Positions 5,876-35,961 of a stretch of DNA of 64,000 nt are shown here, piece by piece. Origin of the DNA: Macrostomum hystrix (lineage: Eukaryota; Animalia; Platyhelminthes); contig CATNEN010000003.1 in assembly GCA_950097015.1 (NCBI GenBank), positions 4,898,001 to 4,962,000 of the forward strand, in the 5' to 3' direction. The notes under the pieces were generated by a model. The model did not search any database and was not told the origin of the DNA. It was given only the letters and a program-made list of their open reading frames with translations. Position 1 is the stretch's first letter, and each line of letters starts with the position of its first letter. Made by a program: the position numbers and the translations under genes.

Positions 5876-8572
5876 CAAGCGTCAGTGAGTACGCAGGCCT
5901 TGCCAGCGCCTCCAACACCGGAGGCTGAGCAGCGCGTGCAAATCTACGACACCCACGAGGATGCTATGAGTCACAGTGAGTCCAACTCACCTGGCCAAGC
6001 TAGCGCTGAGCACTACAAGGTCTACAAAATTCGGTGGTACATTCTGACACTATATTCACTCCTAGCCTTCAATCAGGGTCTAATCTGGAACACTTGGGGT
6101 CCATTGAAAGACGCCATGCAGTCGGCTTATTCTTGGTCTAATTTCGAGTTTGGCATGCTGCCTAATTGGGCACCGATTGGCTTTTTGTTAGCGCTGGCAC
6201 CCAGCCTGTGGATTGTGAATCGTTGCGGCCTCAGAGTTGCTTGTCTATTCGGCGCCGGCATCATGGCAGCCGGTACTTTGGCTCCGTGCTTCCTAGCTAA
6301 GGATGAATCTTACACCTACTTATTCACTGTCTTCTGTCACGTGAATGCTCTATTCTGTGGCCTATCCTGTCCAGTAGCAATGTCGCTACCTCCGGCCCTA
6401 TCAGCGGTCTGGTTTCCGCCTCGTGAACGAGTCCTGTCCACATCGATTGCTGCGCTTAGCAACTATATTGGCAGCGCTTTCTCATTCCAATTCGGTCGAT
6501 TGTTTGTCACCGGATCGAATGTTACCGGATTGTCTTCTGACACTCTGCGGCAGGGAGTGACTAATCTGCTCTATCTGGAGAGTATCTGCGCGTTCACCGT
6601 TCTGATACTGTTCGTGGTACACTTTCCAGCCAGACCTGCGCTAGCTAGCAGTCACAGTGCCGAAGCTAGTCGTCTGAGTGTGCCAGATTGCCTGCGTCAA
6701 CTGATTGGTCTCCACCGTAACAGCGGCGGTGTCGGCAGCCTTGTATCATTTTGGTCCGTCTGTTTAGCCTATTCAATAGTCGGCGGCGTTAACGGCGGTT
6801 TTCTAGCCGCTTTCAATCTCAATGTGGAATCTCTCGGAGCCACTGTTGACGAAGCCGACGCTGCTGGCTTCTGGTCTGTGCTGTCCGCTGGTTTAGTCTG
6901 CCTACCTGTGGCACTGTCGATTGGCCGTTTGCGCAGTCGTTTACGACCCTGCCTTCTGATCCTGCTGCTATTGGCTGGCTGCGCTTACACCTGTTTCAGG
7001 TGAGACTGCTGATTGGCTGATTGGTTTTCTGGCACCATATTAATGGGATTTGATTTTAACTTTTTTTCGGCTTAACAGCTTAACGTAGATTTTGTGCTTG
7101 GGTTTTTGGATTTAAGACTAGACTATTTTAGAGGATATTTTAGACACGCGTTTTATGGGATATTTTGGACACACATGGTTTCAGGGGATATTTTAGACAC
7201 ATGGTTTCAGGGGATATTTTAGACACATGGTTTCAGGGGATATTTTAGACACATGGGTTCTGGGGATATTTTAGACACATGGGTTCTGGGGATATTTTAG
7301 ACACACATGGGTTCTGGGGATATTTTAGACATATGGGTTCTGGGGATATTTTAGACACACATGGGTTCTGGGGATATTTTAGACACACATGGGTTCTGGG
7401 GATATTTTAGACACACATGGGTTCTGGGGATATTTTAGACACACATGGGTTCTGGGGATATTTTAGACACATGGGTTCTGGGGATATTTTAGACACACAT
7501 TGGTTCTGGGGATATTTTAGACACACATTGGTTCTGGGGATATTTTAGACACACATTGGTTCTGGGGATATTTTAGACACACATTGGTTCTGGGGATATT
7601 TTAGACACACATTGGTTCTGGGGATATTTTAGACACATGGGTTCTGGGGATATTTTAGACACACATGGGTTCTGGGGATATTTTAGACACATGGGTTCTT
7701 GGGATATTTTAGACACACATGGGTTCTGGGGATATTTTAGACACATGGGTTCTGGGGATATTTTAGACACACATGGGTTCTGGGGATATTTTAGACACAT
7801 GGGTTCTGGGGATATTTCAGACACACATGGGTTCTGGGGATATTTTAGACACACATGGGTTCTGGGGATATTTTAGACACACATGGGTTCTGTGGATATT
7901 TTAGACACACATGGGTTCTGGTGATATTTTAGACACACATGGGTTCTGGGGATATTTTAGACACACATGGGTTCTGGGGATATTTTAGACACACATGGGT
8001 TCTGGGGATATTTTAGACACACATGGGTTCTGGGGATATTTTAGACACACATGGGTTCTGGGGATATTTTAGACACATTTTTAGTCATATGATATTTATT
8101 TTAGACATATTTTAGATATTTTAGATTTCATTTTCGTTTTCATATAAACGATCCCCTGTACCACTGCCACCCTGCATTCAGCCTCACCTGTCTAGGTGTT
8201 CTACCTCGCTGGCCAGCATTAATCTACATCTCTAGTTGCGCAGGCAGTGTATTTCTCTACTCCTGTGTTCCGTTCTTTTTTGAGTTGGCAGCTGATTTAG
8301 CCTACCCAGCGCCCGAGTCGATCATATGCGGCCTACTAACCCTTGGCAACAATCTGGTTGCTATGGCATTTCTATTCATTGTAGCCTCGGGTGTTGGTCA
8401 AGAATCTGGTCGAACGCTTTGGATCAATTGGACAATGTGTGCTGTTTGTTTCGCTGTCCTACCAGCTTTGTTATTGACTCCGGCTCAACTCAGACGAGAT
8501 CTAGCTGATTCGCCAGATTCTATCAACGTTCTAGACGATGCTGATACAGACTTTTTGTTACCTAGGGCTTAA
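5876..8572 (+). CDS. MFS transporter, SLC49A4/DIRC2 (FLVCR-family)-like
   Basis: Exons 5876-6999 (tttcag| ... AG|gtgaga) and 8182-8572 (attcag|, phase 2) give a multi-TM protein with family motifs YKVYKIRWYIL, WNTWGP, SAVWFPPRER and FFELAADLAYPAPE. Start is either ATG 5966 or an upstream exon. Confidence 0.88.
7140..8080. repeat. 26/28-bp minisatellite (GGGTTCTGGGGATATTTTAGACACACAT) filling the MFS intron
   Basis: Tandem units differing by one AC dinucleotide. Confidence 0.95.
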
Positions 8573-16884: not shown

Positions 16885-17540
16885 ATCATCACCGTCTTTA
16901 ATGGATACACTCCTGACTAATAATCATCGTCTTTAATGGACACCCTTCTGACTAATAATCACGTCTTTAATGGACACCCTCCTGACTAATAATCATCGTC
17001 ATTAATGGACACCCTCCTGGCTAATAATCATCGTCATTAATGGACACCCTCCTGACTAATAATCATCGTCTTTAATGGATACCCTCCTGACTAATAATCA
17101 TCGTCTTTAATGGACACCCTCCTGACTAATAATCATCGTCTTTAATGGACACCCTCCTGACTAATAATCACGTCTTTAATGGATACCCTCCTGACTAATA
17201 ATCATCGTCTTTAATGGACACCCTCCTGACTAATAATCATCGTCTTTAATGGACACCCTCCTGACTAATAATCATCGTCTTTAATGGACACCCTCCTGAC
17301 TAATAATCATCGTCTTTAATGGACACCCTCCTGACTAATAATCACGTCTTTAATGGATACCCTCCTGACTAATAATCATCGTCTTTAATGGACACCCTCC
17401 TGACTAATAATCACGTCTTTAATGGATACCCTCCTGACTAATAATCACCGTCATTAATGGACACCCTCCTGACTAATAATCACCGTCTTTATGGACACCC
17501 TCCTGACTAATAATCACCGTCTTTCATGGACACCCTCCTA
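16885..17540. repeat. 35-bp minisatellite (TAATGGACACCCTCCTGACTAATAATCATCGTCTT)
   Basis: Period 34-35, no spacers. Confidence 0.95.
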
Positions 17541-17832
17541 AGAAATCGTCACCCGTCTTCCATCGTACGAAATTCTAGGAAAACCTAAAATTTGGTATTA
17601 GCAATGGGCTATAGTCATATGCTGTCAATGGGAGAATTTGATGGCTATGAACAGTTTACTTCGTGAGTGGCTGAGCTAGATGGAGCGCCGAAGCTGGGGA
17701 TGTTGGGGGGATAGAGAAGTAGCCCATAAAAGCGAAATCCGTGTGGCCAAATCGTGGGTTCCTGCTACTCACAATTCGCGCAAGTTCTAGTCGCAGTTTC
17801 ATCGCCTTACAGAACTGTGAACCGGATAAACA

Positions 17833-17843
17833 TAGCCAATCAG
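17833..17843 (+). promoter_or_regulatory. Possible CCAAT box upstream of the neuropeptide ATG
   Basis: TAGCCAATCAG fits the NF-Y consensus. It lies only ~30 nt from the ATG, so function is uncertain. Confidence 0.25.
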
Positions 17844-17868
17844 ATTCTGCTTCTGCCGCTCACACAAG

Positions 17869-19105
17869 ATGGTAAGTCTAAAAAAAGACAAATATAGAAA
17901 AATTAAACAACCATGAACCGATTTTTGTCTAAAAGCTTTTTATTTAAGGGCAGTTAAGTTAATCGATTGGAACAGATCCCGTAGTTTTCATTATAAAAAC
18001 TTGGGCCTAATACGAAATGCCGACACGGCCAATTTGAGATGTCGCACCTGGAATTCAGATGAACTCAGACTCAGTCAGCTAAAGACCGGGCTTAGAATTG
18101 CAGAAAGAACTTATTTTTTTTACTTTTTCAGCTAGATACAGAAAGACACAAAATTTTCTTCAAGACACTTCAAAAAAGTCTTCCTCGAAACTCGAGAATT
18201 TGATTCCTCATTTTCCCCCTCTGTCTTTTCTGGCTTTATTCTTCATGCTTCCACTCTTCTTTTATTTTAACTAATTTAGCTGCTATAGCCTAATGCTCGA
18301 TACGTGATGAGGCGGAAGGACTAGAGGAAGAAGGCCTCCCCTGCTCCTTCCTCGAACCACTTTCGAATATATAGAAATTTAACTAAAGCGATGAGAGAGA
18401 AAATATTATGGAGAACGAGCAGATGGACTGGTCAAGCTCGGGACTTCCTCCGGAACGGGACCCGCAACCGTCTTGGACTGATTGAGTTAAGCGGAAATTT
18501 AATAGCCAACCCGGGTACAGCTGCGGCCCTAGGTTAGTACCCGGTGTAGGAAAAAATCCACTAAAAAAATTGTTGCTCCTTGATCAGATCAGGCGATCAG
18601 TATTGAAATGAAAGCCTAGAATTAACAGACAAAGTTTTATATTTGACACCTGTTTTAGAATCGCAGTCACCAAGCCTCCCTACTGGCCCTGCTGGCCATT
18701 ATTGTTGTTTGCGTCTCGGCTGCTCCACACAGCAGCTCTGCTGAATTTGACGATGACGACGACATTGACAAGCGTGCGTACGGAGCTGTACCATGGGGCA
18801 AGCGTGCGTACGGAGCTGTACCGTGGGGCAAGCGTGCGTACGGAGCTGTACCGTGGGGCAAGCGTGCGTACGGAGCTGTACCATGGGGCAAGCGTGCGTA
18901 CGGAGCTGTACCGTGGGGCAAGCGTGCGTACGGAGCCGTGCCGTGGGGCAAGCGTGCGTACGGAGCTGTACCATGGGGCAAGCGTGCGTACGGAGCCGTG
19001 CCGTGGGGCAAGCGTGCGTACGGAGCTGTACCATGGGGCAAGCGTGCGTACGGAGCTGTACCGTGGGGCAAGCGTGCGTACGGAGCTGTACCGTGGGGCA
19101 GGTAA
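17869..19105 (+). CDS. Neuropeptide precursor: signal peptide + acidic spacer + 11x AYGAVPW-amide (PWamide/Wamide type)
   Basis: ATG|gtaagt (17869-17871) spliced in phase 0 to ttttag|AAT (18659) gives M-NRSHQASLLALLAIIVVCVSAAPHSSSAEFDDDDDID-KR-(AYGAVPWGKR)x10-AYGAVPWGR-stop (TAA 19103-19105), 149 aa. Dibasic sites and Gly amide donors are present, and repeat variants are synonymous only. Confidence 0.92.
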
Positions 19106-19599
19106 ACACGAAGCACGGACTTTAGGCCATGCCAGCACGATGAAGCGAGCACCTTACCCTTAAATTCATCGCGAGAACACATCCTTCTGCTCAGAAAATT
19201 GAAACCGATAACTGTTGTTACGAACCTACAAATGACAGCTATGAGCAAAAAAATTCTACAACAATAGACGCTTTGGAACCATCGATGTTACTGCGAGAAT
19301 AGACTGTTGAATGATCCACCGAAAATAGGATAAACGTATGGCTTAAAAAGGAAGGCAATGATACACCTAATTTGTAACCTCCCATGCTGCTGCAAATTTA
19401 CCTGACTGCTCTGCGATAACCGAAAGCTGCGCGTTTGGCAACAGAATACCTCGAGAAAAAAAGAGAAATACACGCTATCGTTTGTTGCAAGTTTAACAAA
19501 ACATTCAGCAGAACATTTTATCTTATTCACTTAGAAAAAAATTGCCGAGAGAAAAAAACAAACGCTTTGGCTTCGTAAAACATACTTTAGAGAATATGT

Positions 19600-19828
19600 C
19601 GCGGAGAGAAGACTTGGGGGCTCGTCGTGCAATTTACGCCCTTGAGGGCCAACCTCCAAAGCAGAGATCAGATAAGTGTACACTGCCTGACGATGAGAAA
19701 TTCAGGGCAGATGTACAGTATCTGTGTGTGTGTGTGTGCTCAGAAGTCACCGCAACGGGCAGAACCGCCTCCTCGCTGGCTGCGGGTCTGGTGCCACGGT
19801 AAATGATGTGCCATTGCCCGCTGCCCTC
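19600..19828 (+). mobile_element. SINE family B, 5'-truncated
   Basis: Matches 21540-21790. Confidence 0.85.
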
Positions 19829-21444
19829 CTACAATCTACCAGCATCCAGTGCAACTAATCGTTCTATTTAGTTTAATATGTCGCGAACTTAGCACAGTAA
19901 ATATTATAAAGAGAAAGAGGCAAAGGATAGTTCTAAACACGATCGATGCCGTGAGCCACTTGCATGTGCTGATAAGCCTGGCCTCAGGGTGCGACCTATT
20001 TGGCTTAGGTCGACATGTGGCACATCTATAGCTGGTCTATTTCTTATCCCTTTGAAAACTGCTGCCACCTCGGGTACATTGTACATCCTGACTGCATTTT
20101 ATTCCTAAATGCAATGGGAAACAAGTTTTTTATGGTGAATGCGCAGACCCAGACATAGACCACTTTCAGAGAGACGTGAAGTTGAGGACAAAAAAGGAAC
20201 TGCAGGAGAGGCCCCCAGTGGGACAAATGACGGAAGTTAAAGGGAATAGTTATTAGGAAACAGAATCTCAGGCGGCAGTTTGGGATTGAGCACTAATTGA
20301 GAAAGATTTATCAATCCAACTGCAATGGAAGGGGCGGGTTTTACACGCGCAAAACACGATATCTCTCAAATTGATCTTAATTTATACTTGAATCAGCGCT
20401 AAACAAGCAGTCTGTCTTTGAAGAGAGCGAGGGCCACAATTACTGTGTTATACGCTCGTAAAATATTACATCGATAAAGTATTGCTGGGTTTGATATTTT
20501 GTACATTTGGTCATCAATGTTAGCAAGTCACTGATGTTCATTTCTTTCGACCCGTATTCTCGTAGATCGTTAACAGTAGCATGAAACACCACGCTAATAG
20601 TTCCCCCCTCGCGAAAGACCTGGGGCTATTTCAAACACCCACTGTCTATTTCACGATAGCTCCTGGCGAAGATCCTGGTGACACGGACAAGTAACATTGC
20701 TCTGTATAAACCTCATTGGCTAATTCTTATTGGTTTAATTCTTAACGACGATAGCGTCACTATCGTTGTTGCTGGGGATGTGAGGTGAAGTCTCTCGTTA
20801 GTTAAACTATTCACTGATATAAATATGACAGTTGTTTTTGCTTTTTGTTTACATTGATTGATGACCAATGCGTCACTAACAAAGGATTAAAAATAAGTAA
20901 TAATACTTAAATGAATATGCAATTAAATAAATTGGATGCACTTGGCGGTAGAAGCGGAGGTGCTGCTGTGTGCCCAATCTCCAGATTGCAGAAGCTAACA
21001 GATGCCTGAATTCCTTGGAAGCCATCAGATGCGTGAAAGTGGAGAGGCTTATAAGTGAGCAACAGAAATCAGGCGGAGCAGTGGGGGGAATTCATAAATT
21101 TGGCACGCATACAACAAACTCCATTCTGTCACTACCTCTTTCCCCATCTCACACGTTGCCTTCACTATGATTAATTGAGCGCATGAGAAAATAAGCGACC
21201 TTCGGCCTGGCTGTCTGCGAGGCTGAAAACTACGCCTTATTTATATTAGATTGATTCAAGAAACGTAGCGGCGGACTGGTCAGCTCAAGGGGTCGCGGTA
21301 TAGACTGAACACTCCAGAATGCGTGCGTGGCCACTTTGCGTCTCGATTTGATTCCACTGCACCCTGTGCAGTTCTTTTTATAAATAAGTCTCACTTTTAT
21401 CTCCAAGGTTTTAGCTAACTACTTGCTTGGTAAGCACCTCCAAG

Positions 21445-21808
21445 GGGAGTGAGTGGCAGAGCGGCTAACGCGTTCGTCTCTCGCACCAAGGTCCTTGAGC
21501 TCGATTCCGCGGCGAGGCCGCATTTATTTGGGGCGCAGCCGCGGAGAGAAGGCTTGGGGGCTTGTCGTGCAATTTACGCCCTTGAGGGTCAACCTCCAAG
21601 GCACAGTGAGAGCGTACACTGCCTGACGATGAGAAAGTCAGGGCAGATGTACACACCTGTGTGAGCGTAGGCCTGTGTACAGTATCTGTGTGCGTGTGTG
21701 CTCAGGAGTCAGCGAAATGGGCAGAATTGCCTCCTCGCTGGCTGCGAGTCTAGTGTCACTAACAGGTGTGTCATTGCTTGCAGCCCTCCCGCAATCATTA
21801 TTATTTAT
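21445..21808 (+). mobile_element. tRNA-derived SINE family B, most complete copy
   Basis: A box TGGCAGAGCGG, B-box-like GCTCGATTCC, structured body, ATT-rich tail and possible TSD TAAGCAC (21431/21812). Confidence 0.9.
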
Positions 21809-22306
21809 TCTTAAGCACTCGCTAAGAGACAGTAATTCTGGCCAACTGAAGCATGTACTCGTAGATCAAGTTTGTGCCAGAAAAGGACGGTTAAGACTGG
21901 AGAGTTAAGAAACGCTCGGTCAGTCAAAAAATAAGGTTAAAAGAAAGAAGAGCCGATTGAGAAGTTTTGATCATATGCAATACACTTTGTATAGTTAAAC
22001 CACATTATTCTGTATCACAGATGTAAGAAAAAATAACAGAATTAGTATTTTTCGTCAAAAAAACATCCGAGGACATTTCAATACGGAGCCACAAATATTA
22101 AACTCATCCAGAAAAAATGAGACTCTGCAGTGTCAAAGAGAACAACGAGAAGTGATAAAAAACATGCGGCAGATGAAAGCAATTCATCCTCTCCAAGACC
22201 CAGTTAACGGACAATATCCTACGAAAAAATATTTTTCGGCAACCAACCGTTGCCAATTTGCCACAGCTGAGAAACGTCAAAATATGATCCGGCCTAGCCC
22301 ATAGAG

Positions 22307-23053
22307 CAGGCAAACTCCGGCCCGCGGGCCAGATGCGGCCCTCGAAGCTCCCAAATCCGGCCCGTTGCCCCTTCTGACATCTACAGTGTCCTGTTTCATC
22401 TCTCCCGTGTCTAATCTCTCCCGTGTCTAATCTCTCCCGTGTCTAATCTCTCCCGTGTCTCATCCCTCTCGTGTCTAATCTCTCCCGTGTCTAATCTCTC
22501 CCTTGTCTAATCTTTCCCGTGTCTAATCTCTCCCGTGTCTCATCTCTCCCGTGTCTCATCTCTCCCCTGTCTTATCTCTCCTGTGTCTTATCTCTTCCGT
22601 GTCTAATCTCTCCTGTGTCTCATCTCTCTCGTGTATCATCTTTCTGTGTCTCATCTCTCCCGTGTCTAATCTCTCCCCTGTCTTATCTCTCCTGTGTCTT
22701 ATCTCTCCCGTGTCTAATCTCTCCTGTGTCTCATCTCTCCCGTGTCTAATCTCTCCCCTGTCTTATCTCTCCTGTGTCTGATCTCTCCCGTGTCTAATCT
22801 CTCCTGTGTCTCATCTCTGTCGTGTATCATATTTCTGTGTCTCATCTCTCCCGTGTCTAATCTCTCCCGTGTCTCATCTCTCCCGTGTCTAATCTCTCCC
22901 CTGTCTTATCTCTCCTGTGTCTGATCTCTCCCGTGTCTAATCTCTCCCGTGTCTCATCTCTCCCCTATCTCATATTTATACAGTCAATGCGGCCCGCTGT
23001 CGTCTTTTAGGTTCTCTCTTTGGCCCGCAAGCAAATAAGTTTGCCTACCCCTG
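22307..23053. mobile_element. Non-autonomous hAT (Charlie-like) element containing the 16-bp minisatellite
   Basis: Left CAGGCAAACTCCGGCCCGCGGGCCAGATGCGGCCC; right GGCCCGC...AGTTTGCCTACCCCTG. These are typical Charlie-type TIRs with GGCCC subterminal motifs. Confidence 0.75.
22390..22970. repeat. 16-bp minisatellite (TCTAATCTCTCCCGTG)
   Basis: Same family as 1-250 and 4190-5620. Confidence 0.93.
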
Positions 23054-24826: not shown

Positions 24827-25150
24827 AGAGGTTGTAGCCTAGTGGTTAGGGCGTCGGACTAACGACTTGAAGGTCGGGGGTTCGATTCCCGACTCCACTG
24901 AAACAATTTGTGTCCTTTAGCAAGACACTTAACTCTGCATTGCTTCAGTTCACCCAGCTGTTAAATGGGTACCAGCATCAGCTGGGATAATTGAAGGTGG
25001 GTGAGGCGTCCCCCCAGTCCATGGACTGAACAGCTGTACGCAGCCTTCAGATGCGCCGCGCAATAGCTGCGGCTGTGCTGTCGGCTGCACATCTGGCCCG
25101 ATTGGGGCAGGTGTAATCATTATTAGTATTAATTATTACAATTAATTATT
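24827..25150 (+). mobile_element. CORE-type SINE family A, full length
   Basis: Near-identical to the 8863 copy. TSD ATGATTAG (24816-24823/25151-25158). Confidence 0.93.
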
Positions 25151-27733: not shown

Positions 27734-30700
27734 TCACTGTCTATTACCAGAGGAGGTTGTCGAACCAGTTCGTCTACGCTTAGCCGAAGATGTAGGCGCG
27801 TTAGACTTGGTTGAAACTCGCTTTATTACAGGATCAGTTGCCGAGGCGACGGCGCATGGCGATACTGGAGAGTCACCGGAACCGGCTGTGGTCGTCGCTA
27901 CCGCTGCTGATGCTGCTGTAGCCGGCTGATCCTGAGTGTAGAACAGAATGTATGCCTGGGAGGCTAGAACTTCGTCTAGGCTGCTTGGCTGCACAAATGC
28001 GTCGTTGCAATGAAGCCAGGAGCCTGCGGTACGGAAATTATTGACGAGGATAAATAATTGATTAGACAGTATTCATACATGCATAGATGGGTAAACAGGT
28101 TGATAGAGTATTCGGTAGATTAGGTAGACTGATTGGTAGGCAAAGTAGACGGATGGGTTGGGTAGACAAGGTAGATAGATTGGTCAGGTAGGCAAGGTAG
28201 ACAGATGGGTTGGGTAGGCAAGGTAGACAGATTGGTCAGGTAGGCAAGGTAGAAGGATGGGTTGGATAGAGAAAGTATTTAGTTCGGTTGGGTAGACAAA
28301 GTAGATAGACGGGTTGGGTAGACGAAGCTCTTGCAGTAGTATAATTTACCAGTAGCTCGATTAAAACAGAATGAAGTATAATGGCCGGAGTGAAAGCCGC
28401 GACCGTGATGCACCACAACGCCAGTCAGGTGATAATTATTGCCAGCATAATCCAAGCCTGGCCCATTGGCTGCAGAGGCGGAGCCGGCCTCATTATCAGG
28501 CAGCAGGCAGGACACATCCAATTGGCTGGTGAAGCACACGCGTGAGCAGATTTTTTCTCTGGTGCGACCAATCCAGCGGAATCGTTTCAGATGCAGTCGA
28601 AGCACGCGTGGCAGTCGTTTAATGCGCAACTGTTGTCTAGCTTTGGAATAGAGCGGCACCCGTTTAGTCCGCTGCGACACTGGCGACCTGTTGCAGGTCT
28701 CGCACAGGTAGCTGCGATCTTCAATCTCAGTTTCCCTAGCGAATAGGCGCAATAATTCAGAGAGCTGGCATTCGTTCTGTTCGCCAGTTTGACAACTCTC
28801 AGGAAAGGCTAACGAGATGTCCATGAAGATGTCCTCAGTTTGAGAACATCTGCCGCATTGTAGGCAGCGAATGGTGGACAAATAAGAGCCTTGAAATGTT
28901 CGCGACACAATGTCCTGCGACTGACTAAGCTCCTTCTGCAGCCTATCTAACAATTCGCAGAGAAATTCCTGGGCGTCCTGTTGGCGATAGCCGCGAAAGA
29001 ATGGCACCTGACGCCACACACAGGTTAGTAGGCCCTGCGGCGAGACAACGGCTCTGCGGCCTGACCAGAGTACGCGGAATAAGGCGTGCAATTCCTCCGA
29101 CAATGTACCAGTTGGACCGTCCTCAGCAGCGTAGGCGATGGCTTCGGAGTTGCGCACACTGTTAGACTGATGACTGCCGCCGCTGAGGCCGCCACTGACG
29201 CTTGTTGCTGGCGATGTTCCCTGCTTCTGCTGCTTGGATCGCGGCTTTGAAGAAGACGAAGACTGCTGCTGATGCTGCTGCTGCTGTTCAACCGATTCCA
29301 AGCATTCCATCGATGTTAAACGACGCAACGATTTTCTGCCATTGCCGCTGTCGCTGAGACGTCTACTATTAGCACGCTGAGAAGGGCAGGAAGGCGATTT
29401 GGACATTGGCGAAGACGTAGCCGACTGTTGATTGCCGGTACCGTTTAGAGTCAAATAATCAATAAAATAAGTGGCCAAACAATCGGTGTGGCTCAGTATC
29501 TGCACCACTGAATTGATGTAGCAGGTGTTGCCAAGGTTACGCAATCCAGTAGTACCCGGCAAGATTATGATGGCAGATTTGCCAGCGCCCGATTTGTCTC
29601 TGCCAGACGACGCCGAAGTCAGCGACGAAGAACTGGTTCGACTGCGGCCCACCCCGGTTGACGAAGTAGGCGCCATAGAGGAGGCCGTTTTAACCGCAGC
29701 GGGTCGTCTGCGCAGCATCGCTCTGTGCCACAGGCGCAGAGACCAGGACAGTCGAGAACGCCTGTGAAGCATCAGGGCTGTGTAGCTCAGATCCGCCTGC
29801 ATAAGGTTGTGCGCTTTCCTACGGGAAAAATAAAGAAATCAGTGGGATTTCTACTAACGATTTATCTAAGAAATTAATAAAAATAACTAGAATATAACCA
29901 ACTTAACAACGCTTTAAAAATTATAAATTCTTTACTTAGTCAGTCTGACTTATATACATATTATTAAAACCACGTGACCTATCTAGATGGCATTTCCATG
30001 GCGACCAAACATAACAGTGTTGCGCCATAATTGCGCAATATTATTCTAATCTATTTTTAGTAACAAATTTTTTAAAAGTACACACCCGATTATGAAGGCT
30101 TAATACATTCAACACATACTAACTTAAATGTACATCTATAAACTGTTTATTAGTGACTCATAAAGCATCAATGCAAATCTTGCTTTGATTACTATGGCAA
30201 CGCGTCATATAGCAATAGAAGTGATGTACGAATATATATAGTAGAAGTGTATTTTTTCACTCCGCCTAATGCCTAACGTTTTTGTGTACGCAGATATTAT
30301 TAAGAACGCTAAAAATAGCAACATCAAAGTATGAAGCAGGACAATAGAAAACTTACTGCCTAGGATTCGCTGCTTGCGATCGGAGCAGGCGAGAGCGGAG
30401 GCTGCAATTGGTTAAAACTGAGAAATTCTGAGCTGCAACAGCGTCTAATGCCATCCGTAGGATTTTTATATCTCCAGCGGCATTGTCGTTTAGGATGTAG
30501 TCGTCGCACACATAGCTGCAAGTTAAACATAATAATTTACTACATACTAAATATAAGGCGAGATGGATTCCCAGGATAGAATCAAAGGAAGGCTGAGGGA
30601 ATCGAAGGATTGCAGAGGGAATCGAATGATTGCAGAGAGAATCGAAGGATTGCAGAGGGAATCGAAGGATAGTAGAGGGAATCGAAGGATTGCAGATGGA

Positions 30701-32288: not shown

Positions 32289-35200
32289 CTAGTCCAACTG
32301 ACAATTTAAAATAGCCACTATCGAAGGCCAATATTCGTCCCCTCTATCGCTGACAGCCTTCTGGGATCGAAGTTCCAATAGGCGCTGAGATGGTATGAAA
32401 CTCAGCGCAGATGCTGATGCACTACTAGCAGGAGTAGTAGGCGACAATTCAACTACCCTCGGGCATAAAAGGTAGAGCTGATGCCACACTAAGGACGGCT
32501 CCACCGCGTAGATACAGCGCATCGATTCCAGAGCGGCTAGTCGCAATTCTTCGGGCAATTTTTTTGAAAGGAACGGAGCTAGTCCGGAGTTTACTAGCAG
32601 GTCTAGACTCATTAGTTGCAGCCGAGATCTAAAATTTAGTTTTAGATAAGGAAAAAAGAATTGAGCGTATGATATTTACATTGGTGGGTTTCCATCGGGG
32701 GTGTGTTCTTTGCGGATAGCTTCTGGCGTGCCCGAAAAAGATGACGAGGCATTTGCCTTGCTCTGTTAAGGTAAAGTACAACCCGAGTGCTAAGCTTTAA
32801 TGACTGCTAAAAATTAGCTAATAATGACAGAGTAAATGGGTTAAGTAACTTGTATTCCCCAATTAACAGAAGAAAATATAAATAAAGAAAGTTTCAGTTA
32901 CTAATTCGATTTTTATAGTCTAATATTTGCTGGACTTTGTACATTTTAGCTTTTAAAGTTCGAAAAGATTTTATTCAGATCCTAGAGATCCTAGATCCTA
33001 AAGAAAGCAACGACGCAAGAAAAAAAACAAACACAAAAATAATAATAACCAAATAATTTTTGTTTACCTAACAGCCAATGGACCCAGACTTTGTAGTATG
33101 CAACGAAGTCGACGAAATTCTTGACAGCGTCGAAAAACTGCCGGCTGCCAACTAGGCGCTCGAGCCAGAGCTGCGGGTAGCATTGTTCGACACAGTGGTC
33201 TAATCACATCGTCGGCTATGCGAGACCGTAAAAAGTCACCGGAAAGGTTTGCCACAGCTAGAACCGTGTTGACAGCCTCTAAAGATACAGAATGATCAGG
33301 ATCTGCTAGACGACGAACCGTTGCAGGCCACAGACTATGAATAGTTGGCAATAGACGCTCTTGGGAGGGCCCATCATCGTGCGACATAGCGTAGGCAGCA
33401 TACGTGAGCCCGGCTAATGCCGCCCTACGAACGCTAGGCTCGTCTTCAAAGTGAGTCAAGTGAACTAGACGATCAACTACCTGTTGACAGAGACGAGCAT
33501 GTACTGGCGGTGGAGGCTTCTGAGCACGAGGTTCATCGTCTTCAACGACGCTTGGTTTATCGTCCCCTGCGCTGGATGGATATTCGTATCCGCGCCGACG
33601 ACGCCAGATAATCAACAGTTCTTTTGCAGCCCGGTCTGCTTTCAGAATTCGATCTCTGGAATCGTTGCCATTAACTTCGCCTGAAGTCGGCATAGTCAGT
33701 GCATTAGTAAACATATGTCCTTCTACGTCAATGTTTAACACACGGCAAAGTGATCGCAATAGGAACGCCAATAATGGTACCAACATTCTATGCAATTGTT
33801 CGTAGTGCTTGTCAACTCGATCGCATAGGCGCAAAACTAGAGGCTCCAGTGCTGGCAAAACGTCGGCATTGCAATGAGCTAAAGCGCTGTGCAAAACGGC
33901 AAATGGCTCGTGCGATGGTGGTCCGAGTAGCTTCACTAGGCACTGATTAAAAATGTAGTCAGCATTAGCACCAATTAAACTACCAATGCTAGTCGAATCA
34001 GAAATCGATTGAGCAAGCTGGGAGAGGCATTTAAGGGCAGCAGCTCTAACTGCAGTCAGTGGATGTGCGCAAGCGGCTAGGCATGGATATAGGCAATTCA
34101 TTGGGAGTGTTTGATCATTAGGAAAGTGGCGACCTAAGCGACCAACAAGGCGGAGGGCTAAACGACGGGCAGTCGCTGATTCGCGTCTTTCGCGAGCCGT
34201 TGCTGCATTTGCCGAAGCTTTAGACACTGCGACAAGGGCCATCGACATCGATGACGGTTCGACTTCAGTTGAATCTAGAACAGATAAAGCGCATTCCAGA
34301 AGGCGTTGTTTAGTAGCTTCAATTTTTTTGCAACGTGCAGCGATTGCTACTAGCAGCGCGAGACATCCAAGACGCAGACGACGTTCGGACGTGGATATCG
34401 AAGTCATCGATGACAGGCAGTCAAGTGTAGCATCAGCTAATAAATCCCCAGTATCATCATCACTACTGCTACTAGACATGCGCGTCAACAGTAGTCGAAC
34501 AGCACCGGCGACATCAGCATCCACTCCGTCATCATTGTCTACATCATCGTCAGGTTCAGGATCCGCTTCTTCGACGAGAGACAAACGAGAGGCGTCAGGA
34601 GCGATACAGAATGCAAGGCCTCGGATCAGGCAGTCGCGATGTAGAACGGAGCGAAGACACAAACGACCACTGCTTGGCCGAACATTGGAACAGCCAGCAA
34701 GGCCATTAAGACAGGCGAGCAATTCGTCGCGATTTCCGTGACATCCAGAAGCTAAGCGTTCAAGACTTTCGCACAATTCTAAAGCAGCCTTATCAATGCG
34801 GATAGTTTCACTATCGTCCCCTAGAATCTCGAGCGCAATTGAGCTCACTTTAGGCTGCTGATCGGCACAAAGACGTAAAAGGCGATTTAAAAGACGTGGT
34901 CGGATAACATCGGCTGCATCAGCTGAGGGCAGAATTGGCAAGACATTGTGAAGCAGGCGGCCGCAAAAGTAACAGATTTCAAGGCGAACGGTCCAGTTGG
35001 CCTCGATGTCTGGTCGAAGGGCACTTTCGAGCCAGGCGTCGACGCGCCTTGCTGTATCAGCTGTGAAAGTTTCATTTGAAATCAGCCCCATGGTAAGTAC
35101 GCGGCGCATAACTCGAAGAATAGCGCAACGGGACCTAGAATTTAATCGGATACTGCCTGATAAAACGCTACCTAGTTTACTAACTAAACCAGGCAACAGT

Positions 35201-35961
35201 GGACGTAAGAAGGCTGACACAGCACTTTTACCCAACTTAATGCCTTTAACATCTGTAGCATCTATTTCAAGGGTAGAACAATCACTGTCATTGTTATTGT
35301 CGAAGCCAATGTCAGACAACTGAAGCTTTAACAAACTTGTCAAGCAAATGGCACCAGCGCACCGATCATTAGTATCTCCAGGATCAACAGTGATTCCAGC
35401 GTCCAAAATAAAAGTCACTAGGTGAGCAAACAATGGCAGTTGATCTTTAGTCAACAAGGATGGGATATCAGACACTGAGCAAAGATTAGCAGCACCTGAA
35501 ATGGCCGCTAACATTGGCCGGCGAAGGTTCTCATCAGTTGCTATAACCAATTGGCAATGTTGAATAAGACTAGACAATTCGCTAAGGATTAACACAATCT
35601 GGCTTACTGGAGGACGACGCTCATGATCAGACAAAGGCAGTTGACGTTGCAGCAAACAAGAGAGAAGTAATAACAGTTCAACTAGGGCAGTGGGGCTAAG
35701 AATATCCGAGGACTGTCGTACACAGCGCAGAACAGGCAGCAAAACTAAGTCTAGATAGGTGCGACACTCCTTTTGGTTCAGTCCATCAGCAACTAAATTG
35801 CGAAGATGACAGAGCCCAGCTAGGTTGCTAGGCTCTGCAATAATACATCGACAGGCATCACGCAACTGCACAAAGATAGGCATAGCTCTTGAAGAGGATG
35901 GACTATTGTTGCTGCTGCCATTGTCAATAGCAACAGCTGCACCCTTTGTAGTCTTAGCAAG
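32289..35961 (-). CDS. TTI1: TELO2-interacting protein 1 (TTT complex HEAT-repeat protein)
   Basis: Exons 35961 (acceptor; in-frame ATG 35883)-33068 and 32628-32289 (phase 2). TTI1-like motifs LLPGLVSKL, LIGANADYI, LLPTIHSLWP, SGDFLRSRI and VEPSLVW. About 1050-1080 aa. True start uncertain. Confidence 0.82.

Follow-up and report, generated by a model that had tools for sequence, protein, structure and literature searches.

Peptides that end in Pro-Trp-amide form a published group in flatworms, the PW-amides of the NPP-5 or Wamide type. In Schistosoma the npp-5 gene gives rise to AAYMDLPW-NH2 and AAYIDLPW-NH2, which were confirmed by tandem mass spectrometry and are behaviourally active on cercariae (PMC9495596), and the schistosome PWamide gene marks a subcluster of brain neurons (PMC11349301). 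The npp-5 peptides of Schmidtea are PNWKDMPWa and SAWRDMPWa (PMC2953531), and in a polyclad the peptide GVWSNDPWa is associated with staining of larval brain cells (PMC4124852); a polyclad gene of the PW-amide type has been named MIP in recent flatworm work (PMC10396302). In the strict sense MIP/allatostatin-B is defined by the signature W-X6-7-W-amide (PMC3390896; PMC3890597), while APGWamide/RGWamide (planarian cpp-1) ends in Gly-Trp-amide and its precursor carries two C-terminal Cys (PMC8557429; PMC2953531). Closest to the present case, AYGSMPWa and GRTNNKNVFRWa were assigned to a Macrostomum propeptide among RFamide, FVRIamide and Wamide propeptides, and AYGSMPWa was synthesised (Dandamudi et al., 2022; PMC9234716); the AYGxxPW family has therefore been recognised before as a Wamide in M. 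lignano. Here we analyse a window of 64,000 nucleotides from Macrostomum hystrix (GenBank assembly GCA_950097015.1, contig CATNEN010000003.1, positions 4,898,001 to 4,962,000 of the forward strand), in which a locus on the plus strand, from 17770 to at least 19501, is very probably a genuine gene that is expressed and encodes multiple copies of a secreted, amidated peptide. Our overall reading, to which we assign a probability of about 0.8, is that of a transcribed preproneuropeptide gene of two exons that encodes 11 copies of AYGAVPW-NH2, is NPP-5-type by motif and most likely serves as a neuronal signal of the Wamide type.

The transcript evidence consists of contigs from four public runs that were aligned to positions 17600-22500 of the window. 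A joint at 17870/18658 (equivalent to 17871/18659 in window numbering, with GT..AG ends and 787 nt skipped) was found in two runs of study P2 (X5, X6) and in run X2 of study P1. The sequence-only reading had named this very junction as the check to be made in RNA, and it is present in three runs that belong to two studies. The stretches 17769/17770-17870 and 18658-18798 are covered by contigs with zero mismatches and the contig depth within the intron (17928-18583) is 0, while the exons reach a depth of about 30-390 in small libraries (48-97 million letters). From the precise removal of the intron, the empty intron and the exon depth we infer that the public runs are complementary DNA.

Exon 1 (17770..17871, plus strand) is 102 nt long and is made up of a 99-nt 5' untranslated region (UTR) and an ATG as its final three bases (17869..17871). 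An Illumina adapter abuts 17769 in X5 and an X2 contig begins at 17770, so the 5' end of the gene lies at about 17770. This ATG is the sole one in exon 1 and has in-frame stops upstream of it; the donor GTAAGT follows directly on its 3' side and the intron is in phase 0. As defined by the spliced contigs, the intron (17872..18658, plus strand, 787 nt, GT..AG) ends in the acceptor ctgttttag at 18650-18658, and the frame of exon 2 is closed by stops just 5' of 18659. From the letters it had been proposed that a donor ATG/GTAAGT at 17869-17877 supplies a phase-0 Met to a frame open from the acceptor at 18659 to a TAA at 19105, with a signal, an acidic spacer and KR-(AYGAVPWG-KR)x10-AYGAVPWG-R; both the spliced contigs and the translation bear this out. 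Exon 2 (18659 to at least 19501, plus strand) carries the remainder of the signal peptide, the spacer, the repeat units, the stop and the 3' UTR. The terminal Arg codon AGG and the stop TAA (19100..19105, plus strand) are placed by the translation and by a read-through contig, and the minimum extent of the 3' UTR (19106..19501, plus strand) by mismatch-free contigs. Contigs at 19071-19439 (X1), 19071-19475 (X6) and 19071-19501 (X5) cross the stop region unspliced and with no mismatches. A donor-like AG/GTAAAC at 19101, which might lead to a third exon, was rejected because the contig 19071-19501 continues through it unspliced, and the stop TAA at 19103-19105 is therefore part of the mature RNA. 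Open reading frames (ORFs) on the antisense strand (18667-19248 and others) were rejected by the orientation of the GT..AG intron. In the ORF listing the exon-2 frame is represented by a GTG-started piece of 55 amino acids (aa) at 18938-19105 only; the listing misses the gene because exon 2 itself provides no start codon for this frame, as the earlier remark that the gene is hidden from the ORF track had it. A scan for bacterial promoters and terminators was empty, which is irrelevant for a flatworm gene.

The translation of exon 2 (18659-19105) reads NRSHQASLLALLAIIVVCVSAAPHSSSAEFDDDDDIDKR, then (AYGAVPWGKR)x10, then AYGAVPWGR and a stop, and with the Met of exon 1 the precursor has 149 residues. 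Its first part, the predicted remainder of a signal peptide, is NRSHQASLLALLAIIVVCVSA (18659..18721, plus strand). Hydropathy and cleavage site were computed on the Met plus the exon-2 translation, while the database searches used the exon-2 product. The predicted signal peptide has a charged n-region (MNRSHQ), a hydrophobic core of 14 residues and an 11-residue Kyte-Doolittle peak of 3.55, and cleavage is predicted between VSA and AP in agreement with the -3/-1 rule. It is followed by an acidic spacer, APHSSSAEFDDDDDID (18722..18769, plus strand), of a kind found in similar position in the two relatives described below. Eleven 30-bp units KR-AYGAVPWG (18770..19099, plus strand) make up the rest, each with a dibasic site, a 7-residue peptide and a Gly as amide donor. 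The precursor has a single Cys, located within the signal peptide, and it ends directly behind its last unit. For the predicted AYGAVPW-NH2 the calculated [M+H]+ is 762.393. Tandem Repeats Finder reports the array at 18769-19100 with period 30, 11.1 copies, 95% matches and 0% indels, which together with the translation agrees with the initial description of a 30-bp minisatellite holding 11 peptide copies. Only three columns of the array are variable, all of them third codon positions and all synonymous. The same pattern holds equally in one antisense frame and three sites are a weak test when taken alone; the strand is thus fixed by the intron and not by the synonymous pattern. A Pfam search of the product returned sub-threshold noise only. 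A protein-language-model lookup placed it among multi-copy neuropeptide precursors, with "Prothoracicostatic peptide" (= MIP) as the closest cluster at 0.89, a value below the evidence level of the tool and used here as a lead only.

Next to the gene itself, two relatives define what has been conserved. A six-frame search of the whole M. hystrix assembly (220 Mb, 42 contigs) with exon 2 as query yielded one paralogue, at C29:5950583-5951149 (L002:1498-2064). Its product starts with MRSHLIIVLLILAAACTSVAASEPDIEDVDFRDIGEFEKR, continues with 15 units (each AYGNPPWG, AYGNVPWG or AYGKFPWG) and ends in G-R-stop; for its predicted amidated peptides the calculated [M+H]+ values are 803.384, 805.399 and 867.451. 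Over the entire exon-2 product the paralogue is 70% identical to the window gene, and both have the AYGxxPWG-KR units and the G-R-stop; the paralogue differs in having 15 units of three kinds, ATG codons within the exon and a TGA stop. At K, R, A, Y, G, P, W and G all codon differences between the two genes are synonymous (CGT/CGA, GCG/GCC, TAC/TAT, GGC/GGA), and every amino-acid difference of the units falls on peptide residues 4 and 5.

The second relative is from another species. A HMMER search over 1.84 billion representative proteins found P0128, a protein of 96 aa that carries 5 x AYGSMPWG behind a signal peptide and an acidic spacer and likewise ends in G-R-stop; it is the M. lignano "hypothetical protein BOX15_Mlig029361" (PAA46830.1 / PAA69966.1). 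By BLASTP it is 61% identical to the window product (E 3e-38), with an alignment that begins at R-[S/A]-H of the signal peptide. The gene model to which AYGSMPWa was previously assigned, Mlig032062.g1, is said also to yield GRTNNKNVFRWa and differs from BOX15_Mlig029361 (PMC9234716). Like the window gene, the M. lignano AYGSMPW precursor has a signal peptide with R-[S/A]-H ahead of the hydrophobic core, then an acidic spacer and KR-AYGxxPWG units, and it closes with G-R-stop, but it has 5 copies instead of 11 and S-M instead of A-V at residues 4-5. A three-way alignment of the window gene, the paralogue and P0128 contains 20 invariant columns. All three Macrostomum genes keep A, Y, G, P, W, G, K and R unchanged in spite of synonymous substitutions, and only residues 4-5 vary. 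Judged from these alignments, with the cleavage and amidation signals and 5/7 of the peptide residues fixed, the genes show the pattern that purifying selection on a processed peptide would leave, and the similarity to the M. lignano precursor and to the paralogue identifies the window gene as a member of the Macrostomum AYGxxPW-amide family.

At its 5' end the window gene departs from the other two. The M. lignano precursor has its annotated Met within the same exon and an N-terminus 11 residues longer, whereas the Met of the window gene comes from a separate exon. Both the paralogue and the M. lignano gene have in-exon Met codons 13 residues ahead of a conserved His, and this stretch is gone from the window gene. 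The separate Met exon thus looks like a derived arrangement of the 5' part, and because the Met sits in this upstream exon the window gene is missed by ATG-based ORF calling. Word-indexed protein searches with exon 2 and with the paralogue gave no match, a result of little weight since repetitive precursors are probably absent from such libraries or outside the length window. The remaining HMMER matches are mostly KR-punctuated precursors (EFLG-amide type etc.) or periodic proteins, so that only P0128 and one further M. lignano protein, P0192 (see below), were relevant; no schistosome or planarian precursor was among the matches listed for the Macrostomum queries.

For the comparison beyond the genus, the published peptides of the NPP-5 prohormones of Schistosoma mansoni (Smp_052880 / Smp_340860) and Schmidtea mediterranea (npp-5, GenBank BK007015) and of the polyclad were used. 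The NPP-5 and the Macrostomum peptides both carry [Y/W]-x3-P-W-NH2, usually with an Ala before the aromatic residue, and dibasic sites flank them; this motif is our own reading of the published peptides and not a curated rule. AYGAVPW shows the NPP-5 ending, Pro-Trp with a Gly and a basic site behind it as amidation signal, and it has an aromatic residue at -5 from the C-terminal Trp with a small residue before it. Tyr in place of Trp at the aromatic position is seen in schistosomes too. The NPP-5 peptides differ in having 8 residues and an Asp at position 5, whereas AYGAVPW has 7 residues, a Gly after the Tyr and no Asp; the schistosome npp-5 precursor is 111 aa long compared to the 149 aa of the window precursor, and the two M. 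hystrix genes carry 11-15 copies. By this motif the window gene probably belongs to the flatworm NPP-5 PW-amide type. The exact peptide AYGAVPW, and likewise YGNPPW, YGKFPW and YGNVPW, had no match in the literature searched. Identity with APGWamide/RGWamide was rejected by the Pro-Trp ending and by the lack of C-terminal Cys. With MIP/allatostatin-B/prothoracicostatic peptide the window gene has in common a multi-copy precursor and a C-terminal Trp-amide.

The genus also has a second set of Wamide-type genes. The M. lignano protein P0192 (BOX15_Mlig026077) has units of [Q/P]SGVFRW-amide, and its signal-peptide and acidic-spacer region resembles that of the window gene. Its orthologue in M. 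hystrix lies at C6:417366-417623 (L009:1360-1779) and is a precursor of GTTFRW-amide, QSGVFRW-amide and PSGVFRW-amide; as the open frame at L009 has no signal peptide, this gene too is likely to have an exon upstream. On the predicted products, the M. hystrix genome holds at least three genes for Wamide-type precursors (two AYGxxPW, one FRW). We consider it rather unlikely that these genes represent a Macrostomum-specific Wamide family in which the AYGxxPW genes are kin to the FRW-amide gene and share their ending with NPP-5 and MIP by convergence, not by orthology. The resemblance between P0192 and the signal-peptide and spacer region of the window gene, and the orthologue on C6, would suit such a local expansion; what the motif shares with NPP-5 comes down to only some four fixed residues (A, Y/W, P, W), and two large protein libraries gave no relative of the precursor outside Macrostomum. 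On the other hand, the aromatic-x3-P-W-NH2 spacing with a preceding Ala is the same in schistosomes, planarian and polyclad, and the blank searches weigh little in view of the fact that short repetitive precursors seldom keep similarity outside the peptide. Going beyond an assignment to the NPP-5 type, a tentative proposal, which we hold at somewhat less than even odds, is that the AYGxxPW-amides are an early-branching flatworm form of NPP-5, and hence of MIP, in which a minimal ligand of 7 residues with Tyr for the upstream Trp would activate a receptor of the MIP/sex-peptide type. If so, the orthology of NPP-5 and MIP would be settled, the aromatic-x3-P-W core would be the part read by the receptor, and two genes that vary at residues 4-5 would amount to a natural structure-activity series.

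Dibasic cleavage, carboxypeptidase trimming and Gly-derived amidation are established prohormone biochemistry. Applied to the window precursor, the signal peptide would be removed in the endoplasmic reticulum, prohormone convertases would cut at each Lys-Arg (the final unit ends in a single Arg), an enzyme of the carboxypeptidase E type would trim the basic residues, and peptidylglycine alpha-amidating monooxygenase (PHM/PAL) would turn the C-terminal Gly into an amide, with 11 copies of AYGAVPW-NH2 as the expected output. The M. hystrix genome has Cu2_monooxygen (PHM) domains at at least 4 loci. The product would most likely act as a neuronal signalling peptide at a G protein-coupled receptor of the Wamide type (MIP/sex-peptide-receptor-like).

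The same processing could also serve a peptide that is released to the outside, in a gland, seminal-fluid or defensive secretion. Exocrine secretions of other animals also contain multi-copy amidated peptides, and the contig depth is high for such small libraries. We nevertheless regard this as quite improbable, given the classical neuropeptide architecture of the precursor, the brain neurons marked by the schistosome PWamide gene (PMC11349301) and the larval brain cells stained by the polyclad PW-amide antibody (PMC4124852).

Several observations weigh against the overall reading. The run records give "?" or "RNA? (a guess)" and not RNA, and the contigs break within the repeat, so the unit count of 11 comes from the genomic sequence. 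The mature peptide is predicted from gene and transcript sequence and its neuronal site is putative, and the proposed kinship with the npp-5 precursors of Schistosoma and Schmidtea is read from a peptide motif of 7-8 residues. Three M. lignano DEG/ENaC channels did not respond to AYGSMPWa (PMC9234716), which leaves a route through peptide-gated channels so far unsupported. The strict MIP signature is also lacking: the peptide has 7 residues and one Trp, with Tyr at -5 and no second Trp 6-8 residues upstream. The sequence-only reading had compared the peptide both with NPP-5 PWamides and with MIP/allatostatin-B; the first comparison stands on motif and literature, and the second fails in the strict sense. 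Orthology of the window gene to MIP/allatostatin-B is plausible and its function may be MIP-like, but we do not file it as MIP.

The repeat calls for some caution of its own. The six-frame search with exon 2 returned >150 periodic matches in the assembly, many of them stop-free. By itself, a 30-bp repeat that stays open is therefore not evidence, because dozens of unrelated 30-bp minisatellites of this genome have open frames. L003-L008, considered as further paralogues, were rejected when their translation proved to be that of unrelated minisatellites with a 10-residue period. Dozens of spurious matches came from an array of at least 18 kb at C1:22873112-22891397, which has a period of 10 codons and regular TGA stops and is a satellite, not a relative of the gene. 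The window gene goes beyond chance in that it combines a signal sequence, an acidic spacer and dibasic and Gly punctuation with splicing and with conservation both in a paralogue and in a second species. A transcribed minisatellite with an accidental open frame, that is, a non-coding RNA, is close to refuted: the abundance of 30-bp minisatellites with open frames and the equal fit of the synonymous pattern to one antisense frame speak for it, but the 70%-identical paralogue and M. lignano both keep the signal peptide, the acidic spacer and the KR...G punctuation, 8/10 codons of the repeat units show synonymous substitutions only, the GT..AG ends fix the strand, and splicing brings the only ATG exactly into frame.

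AYGAVPW-amide is a new member of the published flatworm PW-amide (NPP-5/Wamide) group and does not represent a new kind of signalling system. A macrostomid flatworm genome gains a verified neuropeptide gene and a paralogue that look unannotated. With a 30-bp array as its core and the Met alone at the end of a separate exon, such a gene would be lost to repeat masking and ATG-dependent ORF calling. The three Macrostomum sequences (AYGAVPW, AYG[N/K][P/V/F]PW and AYGSMPW) connect the Tyr-type PW-amides of schistosomes with the Trp-type PW-amides of planarian and polyclad, and they define the residues under constraint.

The surroundings of the gene are rich in repeats. A 35-bp tandem array (17002-17539, 15.5 copies, 96% matches, consensus start TTAATGGACACCCTCCTGAC) ends about 230 bp upstream of the 5' end. 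Downstream, an element of about 300 bp at 21450-21760, with a start that is tRNA-like by eye, has a partial copy at 19596-19800, just beyond the 3' UTR. Many divergent contigs (90-95% alike) stack on both copies, and the element looks like a repeat family of the short interspersed nuclear element type that is abundant in the transcriptome. Contig depth beyond about 19570 is attributable to the repeat copy, so that the extent given for the 3' UTR is a minimum. From 22390-22800 and beyond there is a minisatellite with units of about 19 bp (GTGTCTAATCTCTCCC-type), on which the summed contig depth reaches about 120,000 in X5 and X6; it is probably a genome-wide repeat carried in transcripts.

Among the ordinary neighbours farther away, long intron-free ORFs were found for a homologue of TTI1 (TELO2-interacting protein 1) at 33064-35883 (minus strand), for a fragment of a major facilitator superfamily transporter at 5885-7003 (plus strand) and for a USP44-like ubiquitin hydrolase at 28279-29802 (minus strand). 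A tRNA match at 24828-24897 (plus strand) scores 30.5 bits against an Rfam gathering score of 29. For the USP44-like ORF the best match is a protein of M. lignano at 72% identity, compared to <=43% for its other matches (molluscs and vertebrates mostly, with a few other flatworms); the genome is thus near to that of M. lignano yet distinct from it, and the 72% identity confirms a platyhelminth (macrostomid) host for the window.

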